A stretch of DNA of 63,649 nt, the filler included, from Trichosphaerium sp. ATCC 40318 (taxonomy: Eukaryota > Protista > Tubulinea): NCBI GenBank assembly GCA_038496445.1. It is 3 parts of 3 records of this genome, joined end to end, with 100 filler letters (N's around TTAATTAATTAA, not from the genome) between each part and the next. Parts side by side here need not be neighbours in the genome. Positions count along the whole stretch, not along the records: positions 1 to 17,192 come from JALMLS010000274.1; 2 more parts are not named here. One strand, 5' to 3'. The position numbers and the translations under genes were made by a program. A model generated the notes under the pieces. It worked only from the letters and a program-made list of their open reading frames with translations. It was not told where the DNA came from and did not search any database. This document shows, piece after piece, positions 1 to 16,395 of this stretch. Each line of letters begins with the position of its first letter. The stretch's first letter is position 1.

Positions 1-257
1 CTTTGTGGTATTATACTGTGTTTTATACCATGTTTATGGTAGAATTATATATATTGCATTTTTCAGGTGAAAAAATATGGTATAAATTCGCACTTCTACT
101 GCATATTTATGGTATAATTTGGCTGTTTTATGGTATAAATCCTTTGATTTATGGTATATTATACTGGAATTTGTGGTATAAAATTGTAATCAATGGTATA
201 ATTATACCACAAATCCATGGTATCTACCATAAAAACAGCTCGAAAATTTTAGACCTG
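1..257. mobile_element. Right end of a non-autonomous CAGGTCT-TIR DNA transposon (left part outside the window)
   Basis: Near-identical (few small indels) to 9955-10217. Ends in TTTTAGACCTG, the reverse complement of the CAGGTCT(A/G)AAA terminus at 7216 and 54638. Rich in GGTATA/TATACC subterminal motifs. Confidence 0.85.
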
Positions 258-357
258 AAGTCACATGATAGTACTGTTTATCTGTTGGTCTATGGTTTTT
301 GTTGAACGTTAATTCCAACACTTAACAAATAACTTAATAGTACTACTTTCGACTGCA

Positions 358-3300
358 ATGACCTCAAGGAAGAAAAAACCACTCTATCGCCGTTTCAATG
401 CTTTGGAAGGTGCGTACTAGTACTATATGTTTCTTTTACTAGTATTTGTTGTTTTTTATTTCAAAACGCCTCTTCAATCCATGGGCGTACTACGTATGCT
501 ATGCGCTTTGGTTAAAACAACACCATATTTGAATTGGTGTGTAATTTGCGTTTGCAAAGTAGATTCTTCTTGTGCAACGCTTTAAACCATTTTTTGCTAT
601 AAAACGATATCGTTTATCCTTTTTTAATGTCTTAAAACGATATCGTTTTATGAGGGATTCACACGAGAAAACGATATCGTTTTGTGAATGACTCACATGG
701 AAAAACGATATCGTTTTATCATTTTCGGATTTTCATAAAACGATATCGTTTTTTCATGTCATAGATCATATCGGATTCTGTAAAACGATATCGTTTTTTC
801 ACTTTAGACCCTGTAAAACGATATCGTTTTTCATGATGACTGAAAACAAACTATTGTATGTACTTATGCATACATTTTAGAAGTGTTTTCAGCCTATCCA
901 AGGCAGCTTGTGGAACGTTTGGAGATACTGTCTGACGATGCTCCTCCAGATATTGAAAAACACAAAGCAGATCGGTTAAAGTCTACTGCTGAACTGCGTT
1001 TTGAGTACGTATTGATATTGTTGCTGTTGTTAATGTGTTTAAGAGCATTGGTGAGTACACCTACAGCTGTGTATGGTGTACTACCAGGAACACACATCAT
1101 GACACGAGACATAAAGAAAAGTTTGTTGAGTTCAATAGCAGAATTGAAGGAAACGCTGGCTGTACAAAACTACAACTGTGAAAAGGTACAGATGTAGTAC
1201 ATGTTTTTTTGAATCTTAGTACTTTTGTTAGGAGATTGGTGTCAAGAATGTGGAATCTTTTTTACAAAATGCTTCTGACTTGCTCGATGCTGAGTGTTGG
1301 TTTAAACCATCCTTAACAGATGTAGATGAACCATCTGATGAGGAGAAAACGATGTTTATTTATAATTTAACCACGAAAGTGGTTGTTTACCAATTGTTGT
1401 ATCATTTTGATATGTTTGAAGCAGCTTTTTGCTTCAATGATGGCACTTCTCATTATGGTTTATATGTTGCAGCGCTGCTTTTTAGAAGTTCTATTCTGGT
1501 GTCTTGTGATGTGCAATTGGATGCACTGATAGAGTACGAGCGTGTAAGTTATTTTTTTAACTTAATGTAGAGGTGCCAAAAAAAAATCGTCTTATAAGGC
1601 TGAGTTCAAAGAGATGGAGATTGAGAAAGTGCCTACCAAATTACTCAATAACATCACCATAGATGGAGACTCAAAGGTTTCAGCACATTGTGAAACCAAC
1701 ATTGAACATGATATTGTCTTTGACCGTGACTGGAGATTTTCAGATATCTCATGTTTCATCGCTATACGTGAATTTTCTGCAAGTAACTTCAAAGACAAAA
1801 TGGCGTTTAGTGAGAGAAGTAGTACGTAACTACACGTATTAATTTTATTGACACATTCAGCTACCAAAAAAATACAAGACAGATGTATGACTGTTGCTTG
1901 GCTTCCAATGGGTGATTTAACCACCATTGCAGTGATTGATGGAACACACACGAGTTTAAGTTCGCTAATGTATGCGCATGTCATATCCTGTGTAGTAATT
2001 ATGCTTAGGTCTAAAAAAACGCGTTTGGTGCAAAAGATCTCAAACATCGTATTCTCAACAGTAAACTTTTTTAACATACAGGCTGGGTTCTTTGGTCTGG
2101 TGCGAGTTGGTTCCCAAATAAACTTGTTGCAAATGCAAGTTGGTATGTGCAGTGTTGTTTTCCTGCGACTAAGTTGTTGTTAGGAAACCCAACATATTAC
2201 GATAAATTAAAAACCTTCAAGATAGAGCTAAGATGCTACATGATAACTTGGTCGCAAATACTGAAGGTTTTTCTGAGTACAAACAAGTGTGGGTTAGATT
2301 TAGTCTCAAAAATTACTTGCCTTCAGATGTTTGTATAGCGGTTCGTTATTGTTTATTTGTTTATTGTTGAGCGCAATAGGAGCTTCAAAATATTGATGAC
2401 CATTATTCTATTGGAAAAATATTGAGTGTGTTAAATTATGGGTTGATTTTAAAAGCTTCTCTCTTTCCGATTGGCATAGAACAAGAATTTAAAGAACATT
2501 GCCGAGTAGTGGAAGCGGTACAATAGCTCCTATAAACTGTCTACTAATTCATTATCCTAGAAAGAAAAAATGACTAAGAAATATGTGTATGGACATGATT
2601 ATCATTTCTATTCGCGAAATTGCTTTGCTAAAAACATAACAGCAAGACTACAGGCACGTTTAATTATCAACGTTGCGTTCACTTACTTGGAGTAGTTGAT
2701 GAAAGCGATTACTGGTGAGTATTTTACTAGCAATCCAAATAAAGGACAAGCAAAAAACTTTATGAATGCTGTAAAAGCACTTACTACAGTACGTTGAATG
2801 CACTTTAGCACCAACTGATAAGTGATAGATACAAGAATTATGCAAAAAAAACAACTTGACTGATCCACTCAAAAAGACAAACTGTGCCTTGTTCCGTGAC
2901 TTGAAAAGCTTCAATTTGAATCTGTTGTTTGGAAAGAAAAACTATTCTAATTCGCTTTTTCCAAAAATACTACTCTTTTGGAAACCTCAAGCAGTTGCTT
3001 GCAGTCCATTAATAACAAAGTGTTTAGAAAGACTGTATTCTGCAAACAAGGTTCTCAAAATAGGCATGTAATTGTGATCAATCACATACTTATAGTTTTT
3101 TAGTGGCAACTTTGCATGTCAAGTATGAACGTCTTCCAGACTCTATCAAACCTTGTGAGAACCATACGTTGACTCCTAGCGCAGTTAAGGAAAAAAAACA
3201 GGAAGCTGAAGAACTTAAAAGACAAAGAGAAGCGGACGAACAAGAATCACTAATTCGTAAAGAAGCTGAAAGCACGATGAAAAATGCAAGTAAGCAAGAA

Positions 3301-4690
3301 AAAGATGAAGATAGCAGTGAAAGTATGCCAAAAGTAGATAATACAACAAATACTTAACTGTTTAGGTTTCGGTCTCCGTCCTGGTGATATTACGCCTATG
3401 AGTATTTCCAGTGATTCCGATGAAGATGTGGATGCAGTCAAAAACAAGAACGTTGGCAAGAAAAATAGCAATGACGAAGACGCTGCAAACAATAACGAAG
3501 TCAAAGGCAAAGCAGGCGCCAGTAACGAAACAAGTGTCAATGACAAAACAGGCGCCGATAACGAAACGATTGCGGATAACAAAACAGCTGTTGGCAACAA
3601 AACAAAAGCCGATGACGAAGCAGGTGCTGATAACAAAAGTGCCGATAATGAAACAGGTGTCGGCAATAAAGCAAAAGCCGATGACGAAGCAGGTACCGAG
3701 GACAAAGCGGGTGCGAGTAATGAAGCAGGTACCGAGGACAAGGCGGGTGCGAATAATGAAGCAGGTACCAAGGACAAAGCAAGTGCGGATAATGAAACAG
3801 CTGCTGCCAACAAAACAAAAGCTGATGACAAAACAAGCGCTGGTAATGAAGGTGTTGGTAGCAAAACCCACGTCAGACGTCATGATAATGTCACAACTGT
3901 TGATGAAAACGCAGGTGCTGGAAAAGGCGACAGCACAGGTGTTGGTAATGGAACAGAAGTTACACATGTTCATGAAGGTGATGATGCTATGAGTGTTGAC
4001 TTGTTTGATGAGAATGTAAATGGTACAATTATTACTTACAGGAAAAATGCTAATGAATACAATACAGATGGCGATAACACAGTAATTGAAGGAGTTTCTA
4101 CCCCGCGTACTGTCAAATTCAGCGGCTTAGAGATTCAAAAACTTACAGAAGGTACCTCTGCTTTATTTTATTGATCACTAATGAATACTAGGAGACCTTG
4201 ATTCCATAACTGTGGGCTCAAATAGTGATTTTGATTACTTTCTTTTTAAAGTTCCAAAAGACACATTTGTTGACGGTGAAAATTACATTGATTTGACACA
4301 AACAATTGAACCACTGAAACTTGATTTGGACTCTCAAACTGGATTAGGCTTTCCTACTGACAGTGGTTAGTTGAATAGTCAATATCATAACACATTGACT
4401 TATATTAGAGCCTTTGGATTCATTGATGACCAGCTCTCCAGCAATCAGTCCAGTGCAACCAAAAAGAGTGTGATAAGATTTTTCAGAAATTCAATTTTAT
4501 TTAACAAAAGTATTAGGGAACAGATACACGTGGTAAAAGAGCAAGTCCAAATCAAAGATCTAATGACAACCAATTAACACCTAGAAAACGTGGCTTATCT
4601 CCATCAGCTAAAAAACCTAAGGCTAAAAAACCAAAGATTACAGTACCTAGACGTTCAGGTAGAGCACGTAAAAAAGCCAATAGAAATTAA
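358..4690 (+). CDS. Multi-exon hypothetical protein (transposon-associated partner gene) with an acidic repeat region and a basic C-terminus
   Basis: ATG at 358. Introns 410-442 and 494-880 join MTSRKKKPLYRRFNALE-VFVVFYFKTPLQSMGVL-QVFSAYPRQL in frame. ORF-track pieces 883, 1250, 1614, 1848, 2147, 2856, 3103 and 3398 are bounded by GT..AG. Last exon ends KRGLSPSAKKPKAKKPKITVPRRSGRARKKANRN* (TAA 4688-4690). Middle exons around 2270-2700 not fully resolved. Confidence 0.7.
601..830. repeat. Interspaced array of 7 palindromes AAAACGATATCGTTTT with non-identical spacers, inside intron 494-880
   Basis: Copies start at 601, 634, 668, 702, 737, 782 and 815 (periods 33, 34, 34, 35, 45, 33). The first copy has one T fewer. 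Confidence 0.95.
3470..3910 (+). repeat. Coding 18-bp (6-aa) degenerate tandem repeat
   Basis: ORF 3398-4174 shows units such as ADNETG, ADDEAG, TEDKAG and ASNEAG. This explains the overlapping shadow ORFs in other frames. Confidence 0.85.
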
Positions 4691-7600
4691 TATCTCGGAA
4701 TTCGATTCAAAACACTGCTTGTACTAATAAAAGCAGTCATATCTTCATTTGCTAATGTTTGCATTCTTTCTTGATTATCTTCAGACACTTGTTCTTGCAC
4801 TTCATAAGCTTCTATAGCTCTTGCATTTTCTAAAGACAATGTAGCCAATGGCTCTTGTATAAATTCTGACCACACCATTGCTTCTTTTGGTGGTGTATAT
4901 TCTGTTGAACCATCATAATCTTCAGGTTTAGGATACAAACTGTCTTCAGAAGTGTCCAAACCATATCTATTTGCTAACAAATAAATATCTATTGCTTTTT
5001 TGGGATTGATTTTCAAGCGAACTTCTTTGTAACTGCCATGAGACTTTTTACCATACAAATATGGCAAACTATTAAAAGACACAGATGGTGGTTCACGATC
5101 ATCCACATAATGCATATTAAATATTCTAGATCTTTCTTTACCAGCATGCATTTCATGCTCTGTAATCATGTGTACTCTGCCATGTGTGCTTTTAATTATT
5201 CTTTGAAAAATAAGTAAAAGTGATGGGAAAATTGGTTACCTAATAATTGCAGCATTTGTCATTGCTTTGCCTCTATTCACTTTATTTATGTCTTTGGAAG
5301 GTTTTCTGAAACCAGCAACAAACTCTTTAGTAGCTCTAAACCTATTTTGTTCCATTTTAACTCCCACAACACTAGGCCCAGAAGCAGTAAACAATTCTTG
5401 AACATCATTCATAGAAATTAAACATCTACACACATTACGATTGTTTAGCTATCCATAAGCAGCATACCTTTTTTTCAATTTGTTTCGTACTACTCCAAAA
5501 GCTCTATCATTAGGTAAAAATGTGTGGCCAATACGTAGATAGTTCAAGGTAACTTCTTGAAACACATTTTTATATACTAAGTGACAATAAAAAAATATCA
5601 ATTCCCAACATTTGTTTTGAGAGGTACAATTATCTGCCCAAACAATCAGAAAACGTTTTCTGTTTATACCAGCCAAATGTCTAACAAACATTAAAACTAT
5701 TATAAATAATTGATAGTGCCTGTACAACACTGCAATAGTGTCTTGAATAGTTCTTCTTGCTTCATATTCATTCCAATGATAGCAAAAAGTCTTTTTTTGA
5801 TCACAATCATAAATACCACAAGTTTGCACTGCCAAAGCTCTAACTTACATTAAACAAACCTCTAAATCTTGTGTACCTTAAGTAGTATTGAATTTGAGGT
5901 TGATCTGCCAATTTAGGCATGCTAAGCATTTGCATATAATCGATACTAATAACTGATGAATTATGTCTTTTCCACATGTTATATTGATGCCATGTAGGGT
6001 AATAAACATCCTTATTAAATAATGATAACTCATGAAATAAAGGAATTTGTTCAAGGCCCTTCCATGATACTAGTGCATTCATCTCTTTTGTAGCTTCATT
6101 CACAGTAGTCATCAAAATAGCATTTACTTCAAACTCTTCATTTGAATCTTCATCTTCTTCATATTCATAACTTAGTTGATTTTCATACCAATGATCTTCT
6201 TTTTGAGCACTCCAAAAACATTCTGTGTCAGCAATATCTCTCATGTTAACATCAAAATACAACCAATTTGGAAGTAAATAGACATTTTGCTCATTTTGCA
6301 ATCGCAATTTGGATTGCATATCATACCGCATAAACTCTGATCTTCTTTCAGCAATACGAATGTGAGTATCATGTTCTAAATGTAATTGATCTCTATCTGC
6401 TTTTCTTAAAGTCCTATCTCCAAAGCGGCACTTATACCAAAAGCAAATATTGCATACATCTTCTCTACTACAGCCAAACTTGTACTTTCCAGCAGTTTCT
6501 TTTTTGAAATATCTACAAAACCAGTCAATTTTTATTGTATGTAATTCTTATACTTGTGATGTACCTGCGAAAAGTGCTTTGGGAAACTACATTATCTTTA
6601 CTCACACCTTCAACCTTTTTTGCATACAAATCATCATTTGATGATATAAACTCATCATAAATTGTTTGCAACGTCAAACCTTGTTTGAAGAAGAACACCA
6701 ATTTATGTTTTGCTATGGCATAGTGTGATCTTTCTACCTTAGTACAAATTATAAACTTAATATTACTTATGTACATACTATGTAGTTTGAGATATGCTCA
6801 CTTATCTTGTTTTGAATGCTCACAGACTTTCTATAATGTATAAGAAATTTGAATAAAACCAATAATATTTGCATCGTAAAACGATGACGTTTTACAATGC
6901 AAGTACACTCTAAAACGATGACGTTTTACAATGCAAGTACACTCTAAAACGATGACGTTTTACAATGCAAGTACACTCTAAAACGATGACGTTTTACAAT
7001 GCAAGTACACTCTAAAACGATGACGTTTTACGATGCAAGTACATTCTAAAACGATGACGTTTTACGATGCAAGTACACTCTAAAACGATGACGTTTTACA
7101 GTATAAATACGTCCTAAAACGATATCGTTTTACAGTATAAATATGCTCTAAAACGATATCGTTTTATGACACACAATACCTCTAAAACGATATCGTTTTA
7201 CGGCATAACATCAATCAGGTCTGAAAATTATCATGGTATTATACCGTATTTTATGGTATAATCACCTTTTATGGTACAAGCTCAGTATAATCCATAATTA
7301 TACCATATAATTATACCATAAAATATGGTATAATACCATGTTTTTTGGACAAATGGTATAACAGCCATTATACCATGTTTATACCATATTTCAATTTATA
7401 GAATATAATTATACCATAAAACATGGTACTATACCATGGTATTATACTGCATTTTAAAGTATATTATACCATGCATTATACCATATAATTATACCATAAA
7501 ACACAGTATTATACCATGGTATTATACTGCATTTTACAGTATTGTATACCGTGCATTATACCATATAATTATACCATAAAACACGGTATTATACCATGGT

Positions 7601-10600
7601 ATTATACTGTATTTTACAGTATTGTATACCGTGCATTATACCATATAATTATACCATAAAATGTGGTATTATACCATGGTATTATACCATATAAGTATAA
7701 GTTAGTCCTCACTTGGTCTATACTTGATTTAATAGCCTTTGGCCCTACGCAAACGCCATACCACACAATGCTTTGACAGTAGCCGTTATTGAACATAATT
7801 GGCATATAAATGTGTGAAAAACAGTTTTAAGAGAGAAATCTGGTAACGCGCCCCAATTGCGGGCGTTTTAGGGATAAATTGGCCAATTTTCTCCAATTGA
7901 CAGTATTTGAGGAAGAAACCACTCCACATACCCCATGTTAGAACGCTACAGTGGTAGACACACCAAAAACGCGTTTAGCACTTGAAAAATGCCCATTCGC
8001 AAAAAACCTCCAGTTGGAGGTTTTTTTCCCCGGCTCTCATTTTTTTCTCCCCTCCATAGGCATTTTTACACTCAATCAACGCCATACAGCCTCATTTACC
8101 AAATCAGGAGCAAAATTATTTATTTTTTTTTGACATTTTTGATATACACTCCAATGCATGTTAAAACGCGTGAATAGTGCTATAAGGCCAAGTTGTTTCA
8201 GAGCCTACCCATTTTTTGAGTTTTTTGGTTTTTTTTGGATTTTTTTGGATTTTTTTGAATTTTTCCCTACTAAACGCCCGCATTTGCCAGAACAGATAGC
8301 ATTTAGGCTTCACACCCATGCGTTGACCTTACGAGTGATATTGTAAACCAATTGGCTAAGTCAGAGCACAAAACTAAGTCTTGTCCAGTTTATTGCCCGC
8401 ACAACACAAGGTACGCTAACAGTAGTAAAATAGAAATGGGAATTTTTAAGTAATCCACCCTGTTTTCCTATGGGAAAAGTAGACGGAAAAACTCTTCCTT
8501 AATTCCCATTGAATTTATATGAAATTCCGTAAGTATTACTCATAGAATTCTTAGAGTATTACTTTTGGAATTGCGTATGTATTTTATATAGAATTCTCTA
8601 TGTATTCTTTATAGCATTTCTTAATGTATTTTTTGTAGATTTCAATAAAAAATACTTTATAACTTACACAAAATATTATTCGATACTTTGGTTCAGATTT
8701 AATGCAATGTCATTTTATTTATTGATCATTACAAAATACAAACATCCTAAATAATACGTACAAGTTAAATACATCGTGTCTTCATAAACAAAAGAAGTAA
8801 TTTGATCGCATTTGGTTTTGAGAGCCTGAACAATAATTAATGTGTTTGTAAACGCTAAATTAAGAACGCGTAGGGTTTTTTGATAAATTAAGTGGAAATA
8901 AGCTTTAAAAACAACATACTTGGAGTTAATGCTTTAAATACATTCTTTAATGGTGTAATAAGGCTGTTGCAATGCTTTAATCATCCTAAAACAGATAAGT
9001 AAGAGATATTTATGTTTAAGTGATTTTCCAAACCACCTAAAACGCGTTCTCCGTTACTTTTTGGATTAACACACTTTAACCTGTACCATTGGCTTTTTCA
9101 CCTTTAATAATAGCATGTGGATATTGTTCGCTAGAAAAACCTATGTACCTAAGGTGTCGATGGTTTTTTGCAAATATAAAACTAAACCCTAACCCTAACT
9201 TAATTTGTACTTTCAAAAACCTCAACCCTAGCCCTAACCCTAACCCTAACTAAATTAGTACATTATTTGGTGGATTTTGTACAATAATTCTGAAAATTCT
9301 GTATTTAAGGGAATATTATGGTAATTCTATCAAAAATCCTGCCATAAAAAAAAATAAAAATAAGAATTCTTCACAAATTACCTTAAAAATCCCTAAAACA
9401 AAGGAATTTAGTGGGATTTATATCCAAAATCCCGTTTTCATTTTACCACTGAAAAGTAGTTGTTTTGAAGCCGCTTGCCATAGGTTTTAACCAAGCTAAA
9501 TAGATGATAAAAAAAAAACCAAGATGTGTTAGCTAACAGGTACGATTCCGCTAGAACTTGTTTCCGATGAAGTTGGCAGTTATTTTCATTTCTTTGTTTT
9601 AATCTTGGTTTGGCTCCACCACACAGGTCATTTGTTACTCCCAGTGCTGCCACCACAACAAAACAGCAATTTTTGTACGACTATTTATTTTGTGCATCAA
9701 GCCTTCACTAATTCTTCTTCTAGTTTTCATGCTATGTCCATTCGATGCACTTACAGCAAGTACAATATTTTTTTTGAAGGTTATTTGATGTGTCAACTAC
9801 CACAAAAGAGGATATGGACAAAACCAAAGGTCACGGATGTAAACAAAAAAATGTATTAATAAATGTGGTTTTATTATTAGAACAGTTTTTACACGGTATA
9901 ATACACTTGGTTTTGTGGTATAATCTACCAAGTTTTAAGGTATAATATACCAGACTTTGTGGTATTATACTGTGTTTTATACCATGTTTTATGGTAGAAT
10001 TATACCATATATTGCATTTTTTCAGGTGAAAAAATATGGTATAAATTCGCACTTTCTACTGCATATTTATGGTATAATTTGGCTGTTTTATGGTATAAAT
10101 CCTTTGATTTATGGTATATTATACTGGAATTTGTGGTATAAAATTGTAATCAATGGTATAATTATACCACAAATCCATGGTATCTACCATAAAAACAGCT
10201 CGAGAATTTTAGACCTGATTAAACGTTTAATGGTACCTATGTGGTCGATTGTTGTGTTTGCCTCTGTTATCAAAAGGTATAGAACAGTTGGTTTCTTTGA
10301 AACAGTGCATTGTTTTCATACTTTGTGTAGTCAAATGATGCACGTTCATGAAAAACTGTTTACACACTTGTTGTCGTAAATCTCCATAATAGTGTATGTA
10401 GTAATTCCATTTTGACACGTTTGGATTGAGGCTAGATGCTTTTTTGGAAAAAAACAACATTAGATATTTGCGTTTTTCAAGGTGGTTCATTGAAAACACC
10501 AAAAATTGCAAAAAATACAAATAATTTCGGTTGTATTTTTTGTAGCACTCTTTTTTGCAATTGCATCGTTCGATTGTAAATGATTTTGCAATGAAAGCTG

Positions 10601-10748
10601 CAAATTGCAAATCATGAGGGTAATGGGGCAACAGTGCGTTTATGAATACAGTTGCATCATCTGCACCTGTTTTTGCAATAATCAGCTTGGTAGCATTAAT
10701 GCTACCCCATTCCTTCACAACAGCTTTTACAGCATCAGATAGCTTCAT
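4687..10748 (-). CDS. Sola1-like DDE transposase, 8 exons, 799 aa when spliced
   Basis: Exons 10748-10237, 6830-6779, 6737-6565, 6512-5877, 5839-5726, 5680-5468, 5425-5240 and 5200-4687 all have GT-AG introns and total 2400 nt with no internal stop. Motifs: CNCKKEC, VCKQFF, DNRGKHNNRPHR..EHI..ERSHY, DVCNIC, SIDYMQ..P..YYLR, WADNCTSQNK, GHTFLPNDRAFG, LY..INPKKAIDI. These match Sola1-type transposases as I recall them. Confidence 0.85.
6877..7200. repeat. Ten-unit 34-bp array: TAAAACGAT(GA/AT)CGTTTTA palindrome plus 16-bp spacer, inside transposase intron 1
   Basis: AAAACG starts at 6878, 6912, 6946, 6980, 7014, 7048, 7082, 7116, 7150 and 7184. The first 7 have an ATGA core, and the first six spacers are near-identical. 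The last 3 have the perfect ATAT core, and spacers at that end diverge. Confidence 0.95.
7404..7690. repeat. 80-bp subterminal tandem repeat (~3.5 copies)
   Basis: ATACCATAAA recurs at 7411, 7491, 7571 and 7651 with conserved intervening sequence. Confidence 0.9.
7856..8290. repeat. Imperfect inverted repeat pair, possible nested MITE
   Basis: ATTGCGGGCGTTTTAGGGATAAATT (~7856-7880) versus the reverse complement of AATTTTTCCCTACTAAACGCCCGCATTT (~8258-8285). TSD not identified. Confidence 0.45.
8420..9451. mobile_element. Nested non-autonomous TIR element, CAG...CTG ends, 2-bp TSD AA
   Basis: Left end CAGTAGTAAAATAGAAATGGGAATTTT versus right-end reverse complement CAGTGGTAAAATGAAAACGGGATTTT. 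Flanks ctAA|CAG and CTG|AAaag. Confidence 0.75.
9184..9250 (+). repeat. Two short clusters of telomere-like TAACCC repeats
   Basis: AAACCCTAACCCTAAC at ~9184-9199 and AACCCTAGCCCTAACCCTAACCCTAAC at ~9224-9250. Confidence 0.8.
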
Positions 10749-10896
10749 TTTTCTTATTCTGTGCTGTTTCCTACATACTATATTTCATTTCTATTAAGCA
10801 TGTACTGTGACCATAACTTAACAAAGCATGTGGTTGATTTCAGTAATATATTTTTATTTTTTTTGACATATTTATGTTATGTTCTTTCTGAACAAG

Positions 10897-11222
10897 ACTC
10901 AGGGATAAGATCACTTGCTGGAGTTCATAGTATTAGCCTTATTGATACTTCAGTAACTAATGAAGGCATTAAAGCACTTGCAGGTGTACATACTATTGAG
11001 CTTGTTAATTGTAATCATATCTCATATGCGGGTGTTAAAGCACTCAAAGGTGTACACACAATTTCTGTTAATCAAGCTGCCGTAACAGATGAAATTTTAG
11101 AAACACTACATCAAGGAGGAGTTTGTTACATTGAAATCTGGCAAGACTATGATGATGAATTTGTTGTATTTGAATCTATAAAGAGGCTAGAAGGAGTAAA
11201 AGTTAAACGGGAGTGTTTGTGA
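10897..11222 (+). pseudogene. 3' part of a 22-aa LRR gene, 5'-truncated at the transposon boundary
   Basis: GIRSLAGVHSISL/TNEGIKALAGVHTIEL repeats, paralogous to 38986-40053. Upstream codons of the ORF look non-coding. Confidence 0.75.
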
Positions 11223-12128
11223 TAAGATAAACTTCCATTGACAATTAAAGACAATCAGTGCTTTGTCTTTGCTATCCGTAATTGTAAAAATAAAGAAAGA
11301 AAAAAACACTCTGTTGTCCCCAGAAAAGTTGCAACAATATATTTCGGCTGTATTAGCTTTGTACACTCAACAATACAATGTATTCATTTGTAAAAGTTTG
11401 ACACGTGACTTATATGGATGGATCTTGATACACAAAAAAGATTGTCAACAAGGTTTTTTGTGTACTAGTATTTGCTTTAGCGGTGACTTGCTTGGAAATC
11501 TACAGATTTTCTACTTTACTTTCTTTTTTATTGCTTTACTGTGGCCAAAGGTGTAATAACATGATTTTCAGAACATTGTAACAATTTTGAATAAATAATC
11601 ACTAAAAACACATGGTCAAGAAAATCAGAATGAGCCAAAGAGGAATTTACTATTCTTGTATGTTCGTTGAGACTTTAAAGGCTAATATGAGCGTATCAGT
11701 TACTCACTAGAAGATAGAAATGCTTGTAAAAAAAGTAGACTTCTCAAAGTAGTTGTAAAGGGGTTGTGGAAGTCTTTTGTAGAGTTCAGAGCAATATATA
11801 CAGAGAAATCAAGTTTAACAGTTCTCACCTTTTTTTCCTCGTTTACTGTTATTCGCTTTGCTGCTTTTACCACCCATATGGTAGTTTTTTGTTTCAGGGG
11901 CCCTTAACCTGTTTTCTTTTAGTTTCAAAGAACAAAACATGCCTTAACAGAGTTCGGAGACTCTGACTTATGACACTAATACCAAGGCGATTAACCTATC
12001 ACGTGATAATCTTAGAAGCTTTAAAACCATGTTACAAGTTAAACCACATGTTTATTACAATACAACTAAACCTGAAAAAGATTTATCAATCCTTTACTTT
12101 CTACTGATCGCCGAATAGTTTCGTGATG

Positions 12129-14404
12129 TCATTTTTCACTGCTTTTCTTTGTATGTTTACTTGATGATTTCTTCCTTGACTTCTTTTTCTTAAGAGTTGA
12201 TTCTGGTTCTGATCTTTCATCTTTGTTGATTGTAGTATTCTTTGTTATTGAAGATATCGGGACCCTCTCGGACGTTGTCAAGGAAACTAGAGGGATAGCG
12301 TTTGACTCAGGTTGTATTGGCTTTTCTTCTGATGACCGTTTATCTGTCAAGATTATCGCTCTTGAGGTTGCCAATGTACTTCGATGAGTACGATTAGCAT
12401 CAACAACAATAGCCTCCAGGCCTGCGGTCATGTCTGTAGGCATAGATCCATCAGAAGATGCTAATGGACCTGGCGGTATAGGTTTTTTATTTTGTCGTCT
12501 TCGGTATCCTCTTTTCTTCCCAATCGATCTCTCAGAATCGATCTCTTTTTTCTTCCTATGCTTTTTTTTTCTTGTTTTTTTCTTTCTTCTTTTACTGCCT
12601 TCACTTGAACTTTGTCGTTTTATTTTACTATCAGTATGATGTATTGGCTTCTCTTCACTATCTTCAGATCTTGATTTTGTGCTTTCGGATTGCTCTGATG
12701 ATGATATCATTGAATAGTTCTCATACGATGAAAGGATACTTGAGTTTACTGATATGTCTTCAACAGCATTATTGAAGCTTGCATGTCTTTTCTTTTTTTT
12801 AATAAACCTTGCTACATCTTCAACAAGCTTGTTTGCAACTTCTATACCTTGTTCATCTTGTTTATCTCTACGACCAATAACAATACCCATTGCACTACCA
12901 ATAGCAAATATATTAAATAAACCTGCAACAGTAACACTTATTGATGTCACCATCTATAACAATTATTAGTCGATTGAGCTTATAGTATAAATTATCGCGC
13001 TGTTGCTTCACCACAAGGCTTTTAAAACCTTTGAATATGAAGGCTACCAATCGACAATTCCAAAAAGTAAAAAAGAAATTAAATGTGGAGACTTTGAACA
13101 AAAATTGTAAGGATAGTAAACGACTGTAGTGGTAAGCGAAAAGTAAGCTTCTGATAAATATTTACACATAAGTACCTCACTAATCCAATGATCTGGTCCG
13201 TATATTCCATATCCAACACCAGCATTCACAAGAACAGTATAGTAGTAAAAAATAACACCTTTAAAAAAAGTAAATGAGTTTGGTTTTTCTTTGTACAAAA
13301 AAGACCTAAACCGTACCTTTCCTCCAGGGTGAGTCAAAAGAACTCACACTTGTGAATTGTGATGGATCAAAAAAATAAAGACCAAGGTATAAACTCGAAA
13401 AAGCAATATCAATCTCTTTAGATCAGTGTAAGCATAAAAAAACAGTTTTTGATTTTGAATTTTGTTTCGGGTACCCAAGTAAGTATCAATGAGTATTACA
13501 ATATCTAGTTGACCTTGGCGTCTCATCCTGTTTAGGACTATATCAAGGCATACCTCTTTAAAAGTAGCATAGCGTCTACGACAAACAAACTGTCAAAAGT
13601 GGAATTTACAACAAATGAAAAAACACATCTTGTAGACTTGTACTTGATACTCTGAATCCACGTGCATTTTAACTATTACTATTCTAATTACGTACCCACT
13701 TCTGTTATATGCGCTGAGATAAAATACAACAGCAACAAGTTGAAAGAGCCAGTTCAAGATATGTATGACACTTACGATGCCAAGGACCAATGATATATAT
13801 TTAGCAGCTAAACTGTCTTCCGCATAGAGCAATGCAATCTGTACAAGGTAAACTATCAAAGCGCCCACCGTTCCAAGGGGTAAATGGAGCTAACACTGGG
13901 ATGAGTTTAACTCGCCAACAGAACATAGAGGTGGTAGTTATAAACCAAACAGTTTCATTGAAAACCGAGAAGAGTTTTCACGTGCAAAGCCCGAAAAACA
14001 AACCCGTTTTAGAATTTTTATTGTAAAACATTTGAACGATATGTTCCGTACGTTAATTATCTTCCAATGCCATAGTTTGAATTTACTTCGACACCATGAG
14101 AGAAATCTTGAATGTATTGGCTTTGTGGCTCTTTTAAAATTTGCTGCATTCGCCAGTACGTCGTCATCTGAGATATCTCTTGGAATTGGAGGCTTTCGCC
14201 TTGTCTAATACGTTTAACGTTAATGCAAAATACAAAAAACGCATAATATTAGCGTAGGCACATTTTAGATCAACAAACATATGACTCCTAACAGTAATCA
14301 CGTGGTCTAAGCTTGTTGATGTTTGGAGGGTAATGAAAAATTACCGTAATGCGTACATTTGTCTTGTTAGGCGTTAATACTGACTCGAGCTGTATTTTTT
14401 CCAT
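12129..14404 (-). CDS. Multi-exon predicted multi-pass membrane protein with a Lys/Ser-rich C-terminal tail
   Basis: Hydrophobic exons (13593-13868, ~13130-13300, start of 12129-12953) followed by a long charged tail. Candidate ATG at 14404; 5' structure approximate. Confidence 0.55.
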
Positions 14405-15413: not shown

Positions 15414-16395
15414 ATGTCACTTGTGCTACTCCCTCTTGAGCTACAGCTTACCATATGCGAGTTTAGCCCTGATATTTATAAAAATTGGCCACTGCTCTCT
15501 CGTGATGCTGTTAGCATTAGATTTAATGATTCCTTTCAAAAACACGGTCGCTGGCTAGCTTTCAAAGGTCAAAAATGTTTAAAGAAGCAAGTTTGGGAGA
15601 ACGGAAAAAGGCATGGAGTGTTTAAAGAGTGGCACGAAAATGGCCATTTACAAAGGTAAGTAGAATGTCAATAATCACACGTGGTAAAATTAAAATAACT
15701 TTGGACATCGTCACGTGTTCAAAAATATGAAAACAATTTTATCAAAAAATTCTGGGCACAGAAAACGTGTTTCAGACTCTATGCTTCTTGAAGAAGCATA
15801 AAAACGTCACGACTTTTTGTGTTGGACACAATGATAATATTCAGTTGCAACACGTCAAAATTGCATTTTAAAAAAGTTCGTGGCTAAACACCATGAACTA
15901 TTGTGTTGAACCAAAGTAGCCTTCTTAACTTTGATAACATGATAAGTTTCCTTTTGCTACAGCGCTCTCAAGAGTTTTGAATAATGAAAAGCCCCTGACG
16001 GCTGTTGTAGAAAGTATCGAAAGTAGTGGAAACTATCATGTTATCAAAGTTATTTGTGTACTTTGTTGTAACACACAATAATCTCCTTGTGAAACTTGTT
16101 TTTTTGAAAAACAGGTTTTTTTTTTGATTGTTTTTTTTGCAGGTGTGATCATTATGAGAATGATTGTAAACATGGAGAAAGTACTACATGGTTCAGTGGA
16201 GGTCAAATAAAATATCTTTGTTTTTTCAAAGAAGGTTCACTTGAAGGAGAGTATACTTGTTATTACGGTACAGGGCAACCCAAATATAAGTGTTTTTACA
16301 AAGATGGTAAAAGACATGGTGATTACATTTGTTGGTTTGCTGATGGTAAGATATGTGTCAGTCATAAATACAACCAAGGAACTATTGTAGAGTAA
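15414..16395 (+). CDS. F-box-like plus MORN-variant repeat protein, 2 exons
   Basis: Exon 1 15414-15655 (LLPLELQLTICEF; WENGKRHGVFKEWHENG). Intron 15656-16142 is GT-AG. Exon 2 reads CDHYENDCKHGESTTWFSGGQ..FKEGSLEGEYTCYYGTGQ..YKDGKRHGDYICWFADG..*. Confidence 0.85.
15899..16080. repeat. Intronic long inverted repeat (MITE-like relic)
   Basis: TAACTTTGATAACATGATAAGTTTCC (15926-15951) pairs with GGAAACTATCATGTTATCAAAGTTA (16028-16052). Outer arms TATTGTGTT..CAAAGTA / TACTTTG..ACACAATA. Confidence 0.75.

Follow-up and report, generated by a model that had tools for sequence, protein, structure and literature searches.

At one end of the window, a stretch of 63,649 nucleotides (filler included) from Trichosphaerium sp. 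ATCC 40318, two convergent genes each carry an array of the same 16-bp palindrome in a long intron close to their start. We consider it an evenly balanced call that the two genes form one mobile unit, with arrays bound by an element-encoded protein, most likely the product of gene A, as self-recognition sites. Under this reading gene B would be the transposase of a Sola-type DNA transposon and gene A its accessory gene, both read inwards (Table 1).

Table 1. Features of the two-gene locus and its surroundings; positions count along the window.
Feature	Position	Strand	Remarks
Nested element, second copy, right end	1..257		97 % identity; lies 100 nt ahead of gene A
Gene A, putative accessory gene	358..4690	+	~1100 aa, at least 16 exons; from splice model and codon preference only
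Gene A long second intron	494..880	+	387 nt; GT..AG, open frames on both sides; modelled
Array A	601..830		7 palindromes; inside gene A intron 494-880
SAM-binding-like stretch	1421..1510	+	degenerate strand-helix-strand, by eye; without profile support
ParB/Srx-core-like stretch	1893..1949	+	VIDGxH (T in place of the usual R) following a hydrophobic strand; by eye, split by an intron
18-nt coding tandem repeat	3499..3868	+	in the acidic tail of gene A
Overlapping stop codons of genes A and B	4687..4690		TTAA
Gene B, Sola-type DDD transposase	4687..10748	-	799 aa, 8 exons, 0 internal stops; 5′ end may reach further upstream
Chromodomain-like segment	6044..6145	-	just ahead of the first catalytic D of gene B; common to both relatives
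Gene B first intron	6831..10236	-	3406 nt, 402 nt without insert; same codon as the 63-nt intron of L002
Array B	6878..7199		10 cores; inside gene B first intron
Nested non-coding TIR element	7216..10217		ends CAGGTCT..AGACCTG, flanked AT/AT
LRR gene	10761..11222	+	head-to-head with gene B; frame open throughout, ATG at 10799

The consensus of the arrays is AAAACGAT(AT/GA)CGTTTT with a period of about 34 bp. With up to two mismatches allowed, the 16-mer matched 17 times in the 17 kb around the locus, against 0.04 matches expected by chance, and all matches fall inside the arrays, seven in array A and ten in array B. No copy lies beyond the two introns in these 17 kb, including the genes of the other 6 kb. 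The preliminary description, which placed one palindrome at about 34-bp spacing in both long introns and had not seen it elsewhere, is borne out in these 17 kb. The spacings in array A are 33, 34, 34, 35, 45 and 33, the odd value (a single case) corresponding to 34 plus about one helical turn, and its cores are nearly invariant (98 % alike), while its spacers have diverged (41 %). Array B has a period of exactly 34 bp, and seven of its ten copies are the imperfect variant AAAACGATGACGTTTT. Its spacers are tandem copies of each other with no close match elsewhere in the 17 kb, homogenised along a gradient which, judging by the sequence, is the trace of recent tandem growth. Core identity within the arrays reaches 95-98 %, but the spacers of array A match those of array B at chance level (0.37 vs 0.31). 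Because the cores are common to both arrays and the spacers unrelated, selection on a predicted protein-binding site is suggested, in support of the earlier proposal that the arrays are bound by a protein. Every core also retains two CpG within a transposase gene family depleted in this dinucleotide. The array pattern was not found in viral, metagenome and prokaryote collections. A CRISPR-like repeat-spacer array was rejected, as the spacers of array B are mutual tandem copies and no cas family matched; mirror symmetry among the spacers of array A was likewise rejected (p 0.09-0.7).

Gene B matches DUF7869 (E 8.6e-15) and carries a CxxC motif at residue 266 together with the pattern D..DNC..GHT-x-x-x-D, a combination which we take to be the mark of the Sola superfamily. 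Similarity searches returned two relatives only, L001 and L002, both from one other sample, ERR13858334, and both contigs stop inside the last transposase exon. The candidate catalytic residues D437, D512 and D554 are conserved in both and, with the DUF7869 match, support the previous assignment to a Sola-type transposase. Seven of the eight exons align individually with the relatives, at 38-60 % identity (the remaining one, of 17 aa, is too short for scoring), and the introns of the relatives sit at the same positions, so that the splicing proposed for the minus-strand gene holds. Searches of viral, JGI metagenome and prokaryote contigs yielded no relative of gene B, and none of eight ORFs of the stretch was present in the protein collection searched. 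The short introns, as modelled, measure 28-52 nt; the long ones are similar to each other in length (387 nt in gene A vs 402 nt in gene B without the insert). The description of both as unusually long 5′ introns stands for gene B, where the position is matched in L002, and for gene A it is modelled from splice signals and open frames. As the same first intron in L002 is only 63 nt long and array-free, as is the rest of the 2.5 kb of L002, the array of gene B can be taken as a later addition to an old short intron.

A chromodomain-like segment in gene B is suggested by profile matches. A profile built from the three sequences matched the CDY1 chromodomain (E 0.005) and, weakly, HP1, CDYL, Swi6 and cpSRP43, and the piece from L001 matched Pfam Chromo (E 0.008), with the similarity confined to the first half of the segment. 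AlphaFold models reached pLDDT of 39 and 43, too low for use. Our literature search turned up no such segment in a Sola transposase; if true, it would hint that chromatin guides the insertion of a cut-and-paste element.

For gene A, the model comprises about 700 aa of globular N-terminal sequence, an acidic tail of 6-aa repeats and a basic C-terminus which, in this model, looks like a nuclear signal. According to codon preference the frame appears to switch near 2208-2212 without an intron, and the gene may carry a frameshift. Searches with pieces of gene A against Pfam, PHROGs, NCBIfam, PDB, Atlas, a 1.8-billion representative set, a 5.8-billion set and viral contigs recovered no relative; the sole match, P0003, is a repetitive ORF with 22 residues matched and was judged spurious. 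No recognised DNA-binding domain was found in profile searches. A ParB-like domain gave 0 matches exon by exon with Pfam, PHROGs, NCBIfam and a five-sequence profile, the VIDGxH-like motif being split by an intron. As for an N4/N6 methylase, a domain marked by DPPY and FxGxG motifs, the gene A model has no DPPY-type motif, and an 11-sequence methylase profile had no match when run over the open segments of all six frames. The profile tests do not support gene A as a ParB or a methylase.

Whether the two genes belong to one element was evaluated from their junction and flanks. Since the stop codons overlap, there is no room for a TIR or an element end between them. This overlap and the shared private motif favour the earlier view of a single element with an accessory gene. 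We saw no TIR, TSD or second copy of the unit in the piece, and the left end is behind the nested element, outside the piece. Comparison of 250-360 with 10745-10960 gave a best TIR score of 8, within the null, and the element end formerly placed near 10860-10900 has no inverted-repeat partner above chance. A link of 258-357 to an inverted repeat near 16030 did not exceed that of other segments. For Sola1 the target duplication is 4 bp, AWWT (PMC3845634). The nested insert in the gene B intron was confirmed as a separate TIR element of about 3 kb with its own TATACC-rich subterminal repeats. Its ends are not those of the two-gene unit, as gene B runs across it, which L002 shows. The LRR gene had been regarded as truncated; its frame is open throughout and it may be intact, and it may represent a host gene or further cargo.

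One alternative, which we consider unlikely, is a fixed host locus in a very compact genome, where a tamed or stranded Sola transposase lies beside an unrelated host gene. The arrays would be sites for a host factor, or a repeat dispersed in the host genome, and would lie in both introns by coincidence. The locus would then be of little interest. The missing element ends would agree with it, as would the scarce room for a terminus between the start of gene B and the LRR gene, which lies within about 50-150 bp of that start, and the array missing from L002. CpG content adds to this. NCG codons number 2/140 in gene B, 0/60 in L002 and 0/34 in L001, a deficit suggesting that this family was once exposed to CpG methylation or a similar pressure, and gene A, with 15/111, is less depleted (p 0.0002 vs gene B). 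Because the depletion is unequal, the two genes seem to differ in their histories, which also fits gene A being a host gene. The overlapping stop codons and the absence of the motif from the genes of the other 6 kb count against such a locus. The unrelated spacers of the two arrays speak against two recent insertions of one repeat, and two different relatives of gene B in one other sample are what a transposon family would give.

Less probable again is a single element in which the transposase itself binds the arrays as sites of the subterminal type, to pair the ends or to regulate itself, gene A being unrelated cargo. Repeated subterminal motifs are bound by many transposases, and once the nested insert is taken out the arrays would mirror each other, neither being more than about 1 kb from the presumed end. 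Against this, a transposase 38-60 % identical to gene B lacks such an array, both in the corresponding intron and in the rest of 2.5 kb, and no element ends were located. From the earlier proposal of transposase or partner-protein sites, the protein-site part gains from conserved cores among unconserved spacers, and synapsis by the transposase is weakened by the array-free relative. Very improbable is that the arrays act as RNA, with hairpins of the spliced-out introns giving rise to small RNAs that control the element: compared with shuffled sequences both fold much more strongly (z -9.7 and -12.2), but any palindrome array would, and the earlier suggestion of intron-derived small RNAs gains nothing beyond this, as the fold is not clearly weaker when cores are kept and spacers shuffled (p 0.09), Rfam matches are all far under threshold, and a protein lattice on DNA more readily explains the fixed 34-bp period.

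With the nested insert taken out, each array sits 240-870 bp past the start of its gene. In the reading we prefer, one mobile unit with self-recognition, the palindromes would be bound by a dimeric protein encoded by the element, most likely protein A, whose molecules would line up along the two arrays and keep the promoter-proximal regions open or otherwise regulated. This occupancy may serve as self-recognition against host silencing. Introns would be the only non-coding room within so compact an element, and tandem duplication would lengthen the arrays under selection for core and period, as in VANC target arrays. Gene A and the arrays probably entered the lineage after the split from the L002 family. 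The idea lends itself to direct tests, since the 16-bp site is sharply defined, the 34-bp period is fixed, the arrays are two in number and an array-free relative can serve as a natural control. A bolder version, which we hold doubtful, is a Sola lineage with a chromatin toolkit of its own, in which a chromodomain-like reader by the active site is joined by a new DNA-binding accessory family, possibly a very diverged ParB-like clamp, loading on parS-like intronic arrays of both genes and protecting the element against silencing. VANC-like self-recognition would then have arisen independently here, in a eukaryote whose introns are very short.

A few transposons of plants and algae are known or proposed to make a protein that docks on its own element (PMC5735166; PMC12477816; 10.1101/2025.02.11.637652). 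The preliminary description had announced a candidate new system, which we do not uphold, as two-gene Sola elements, accessory genes by inverted-repeat arrays and intronic motif arrays are all published. By analogy, the locus is rather a presumed variant on the logic of Ectocarpus Sola1-1, Plavaka PAG3 and VANDAL/VANC. In VANDAL/VANC of Arabidopsis, both binding of the accessory protein to intronic motif arrays and demethylation were shown experimentally (PMC5735166), whereas here they are inferred from sequence. In both, short motifs that are family-specific and fast-evolving form arrays within introns of genes belonging to the element itself, these arrays grow through tandem repetition, and the accessory protein, putative here, contains tandem peptide repeats. 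VANDAL is, however, a Mutator-like element with 9-bp motifs in one orientation, instead of a Sola-type element with 16-bp palindromes, and the locus has no Pfam match to a Mutator-like transposase or VANC-family protein and no sequence similarity was found. Plavaka PAG3 of red algae is an accessory gene with tandem inverted-repeat arrays, which have been interpreted as parS-like sites of a ParB-like protein that the element encodes (10.1101/2025.02.11.637652), and such arrays occur at the accessory gene here too. They adjoin PAG3 there, whereas here one lies in an intron of each gene, and the Plavaka transposase is of the EnSpm/Plavaka lineage with a PAG1-3 cassette of three accessory genes, not DUF7869/Sola-type. 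Profile searches detected no SET or methylase gene and no 2OG-oxygenase domain in the two-gene unit. The dictyostelid Sola2-Fanzor1 also combines a Sola transposase with a second gene, a Fanzor (PMC3627910), and the scanned exons of gene A gave no match to the TnpB/Fanzor family. The large Sola1-1_Ec32 element of Ectocarpus carries on the opposite strand a 1104-aa ParB-methylase gene, whose product has been proposed to attach to the element that encodes it and to modify it (PMC12477816). The size and orientation resemble those of gene A, known from a model only, but in that partner ParB-like and N4/N6 methylase domains can be recognised, neither of which was detected in gene A, and the available part of the source mentions neither intronic palindrome arrays nor a transposase chromodomain. 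Nested insertions are common in giant elements of this kind.

The palindrome AAAACGAT(AT/GA)CGTTTT occurs 17 times in the 17,192-base piece, to which all counts refer, against 0.04 expected. All copies fall in two arrays, with none elsewhere in the piece, and each array lies in the long intron (only predicted for gene A) of one of two convergent genes, a putative accessory gene (gene A) and a transposase gene (gene B), as the preliminary description had stated. The cores of array A are 98 % identical and its spacers only 41 %, while array B has an exact period of 34 and its spacers are graded along the array, as in recent tandem growth. Between the two arrays, spacer similarity is no higher than chance on either strand (0.37 vs 0.31), so the arrays have in common just the palindrome and the period. 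The spacing of about 34 bp noticed earlier holds; the spacers of one array are unrelated to those of the other. The shared palindrome and period may be a trace of selection on a putative site of protein binding and on the distance between sites; a repeat inserted twice would leave a different pattern. A search of viral, metagenome and prokaryote contigs did not turn up the array pattern. Array A lies 243-472 bp downstream of the start of gene A, and array B 545-866 bp downstream of the start of gene B once the insert in its intron is removed.

Coordinates of the annotated features
Feature	Position	Strand	Description
Gene A	358-4690	plus	putative accessory gene
Gene B	4687-10748	minus	transposase gene
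Array A	601-830		7 palindrome copies
Array B	6878-7199		10 palindrome copies
Nested element	7216-10217		ends CAGGTCT..AGACCTG, AT flank on either side
274-aa ORF	12129-12953	minus	hydrophobic start, serine/lysine-rich basic tail
Spliced gene	15414-16395		MORN_2 repeats, E 0.0006; N-terminus F-box-like by eye

The piece has about 33 % GC, uses the standard code and contains introns of 28-52 nt. Database searches of the spliced genes were run one exon at a time, and exon models joined from coordinates were used for frames and codon use. None of 8 ORFs of the piece checked against the protein collection was present there.

The identification of gene B as a Sola-like transposase was supported. Its model is stop-free over 799 residues, matches DUF7869 (E 8.6e-15) and contains a CxxC motif and three aspartates, whose pattern we take to be that of Sola transposases. 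Two loci with relatives, L001 and L002, come from one public run, ERR13858334, in which two or more separate families of such transposases are present; L001 and L002 are about 66 % alike in DNA and both strongly CpG-depleted. Our homology claims are based on exon-by-exon comparison with these loci, in which 7 of the 8 gene B exons align at 38-60 % identity. Intron positions coincide, which confirms the splicing. The first intron of L002 interrupts the same codon as that of gene B but has 63 nt and no array, so the long intron of gene B consists of an old short intron, the array and a 3-kb insert. The donor site of this L002 intron (630-692) is GC rather than GT. L002 also carries an upstream exon. 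In gene B, a further upstream exon is possible at 10772-10869 on the minus strand (intron 10806-10772); a start at 10869 is in frame only with one extra base in the 8-base run 10857-10864.

A segment directly N-terminal of the first aspartate, common to gene B, L001 and L002, aligns with chromodomains over their first half (CDY1 at E 0.005, weaker matches to four others; Pfam Chromo with the L001 segment, E 0.008). As CutA and designed repeat proteins occur in the same match list, and fold prediction gave no confirmation, we call it chromodomain-like with moderate confidence.

The model of gene A has about 1100 residues, in which a globular part is accompanied by an acidic repeat with a unit of 6 residues and by a basic tail; its exons at 2200-3100 are uncertain. 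A frame switch is probable at the A-run at about 2208-2212; the two copies of the nested element differ mostly in run lengths, so sequencing error is a possible cause. Exon-by-exon searches of Pfam, PHROGs, NCBIfam, PDB, and protein and viral-contig sets gave no relatives or domains. Two stretches are leads only, noted on visual inspection: 1893-1949 looks like a ParB core, and 1421-1510 like a degenerate motif for SAM binding. Profiles from plasmid and phage proteins gave no match, the ParB profile in the individual gene A exons and the methylase profile in the open segments of all six frames, and the gene A model has no DPPY motif.

The two genes may form one element, as proposed. Their stop codons overlap (gene A 4688-4690, gene B 4687-4689). 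A one-gene transposon requires a terminus beyond its transposase, for which there is no room here, so either gene A lies inside the element or gene B is no longer in a mobile element. The motif private to both genes favours the former. Three observations count against it. No TIR pair for the unit was found in the piece. The neighbouring LRR frame, previously described as truncated, is open from 10761, very close to the gene B start, and may be a whole gene; the right end is therefore not located and possibly lies further right. Finally, gene A is much less CpG-depleted (NCG codons 15/111 vs 2/140 in gene B, p 0.0002), so its history with the element is different, and probably shorter. We consider it rather unlikely that this is a host locus bearing a host repeat. 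The apparent Sola membership of the unit is owed to its transposase alone.

The nested element is a separate non-coding TIR element; a duplication of 2 bp is unlike Sola. Its TATACC-rich repeats are confined to the two ends. Its right end recurs, 97 % identical, at positions 1-257, which is where one would look for the left end of the unit. Each copy occupies 5′ non-coding sequence of the unit, one 100 nt before the gene A start and the other at a distance of 16 nt from the final palindrome in array B; the element may favour open or protein-bound sites. Two short telomere-like (AACCCT)n runs are present at 9185-9250 within it.

CpG has been lost at silent sites in the transposase family, as would be expected under methylation-linked decay, but is kept in the palindromes, which have two each. 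The most economical reading of the arrays is a row of putative sites for a dimeric element-encoded protein, which would regulate or protect the 5′ regions of both genes. The favoured candidate is the predicted protein A, to which we give an even chance, as the array is absent from the related transposase gene; with the same absence in mind, binding by the transposase seems improbable. A small-RNA source is very unlikely, since the strong computed RNA folds of both arrays are largely accounted for by the palindromes alone.

A row of protein-binding sites would not make the locus an entirely new system, as had been suggested. Two-gene Sola elements are known from dictyostelids (Sola2-Fanzor, PMC3627910) and Ectocarpus, whose 21.5-kb Sola1-1 has an opposite-strand gene for a 1104-aa ParB-methylase; this protein has been proposed to bind the very element that encodes it (PMC12477816). 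Inverted-repeat arrays adjoin a ParB-like gene in red-algal Plavaka (10.1101/2025.02.11.637652), and VANC proteins bind motif arrays in VANB21 and VANC21 introns, which grow through tandem repeats (PMC5735166). Our locus probably works like these systems, but its partner gave no match to any of their families in the exon-wise searches. What is new is that three traits occur together: a partner without recognised family, arrays of the palindrome within an early intron of each gene and, in the transposase, a chromo-like segment.

Further right, an AT-rich 17-nt inverted repeat at 11429-11468 is directly followed by CTAG and loosely resembles a Helitron 3′ end, yet is not G+C-rich. The 274-aa ORF had no match in Pfam. 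Genes such as the MORN-repeat gene and the LRR gene are reminiscent of amoeba and giant-virus gene families. A long intron of the former contains a perfect 19-nt inverted repeat (15926-15944 / 16034-16052, 89 nt between), possibly a small foldback element.
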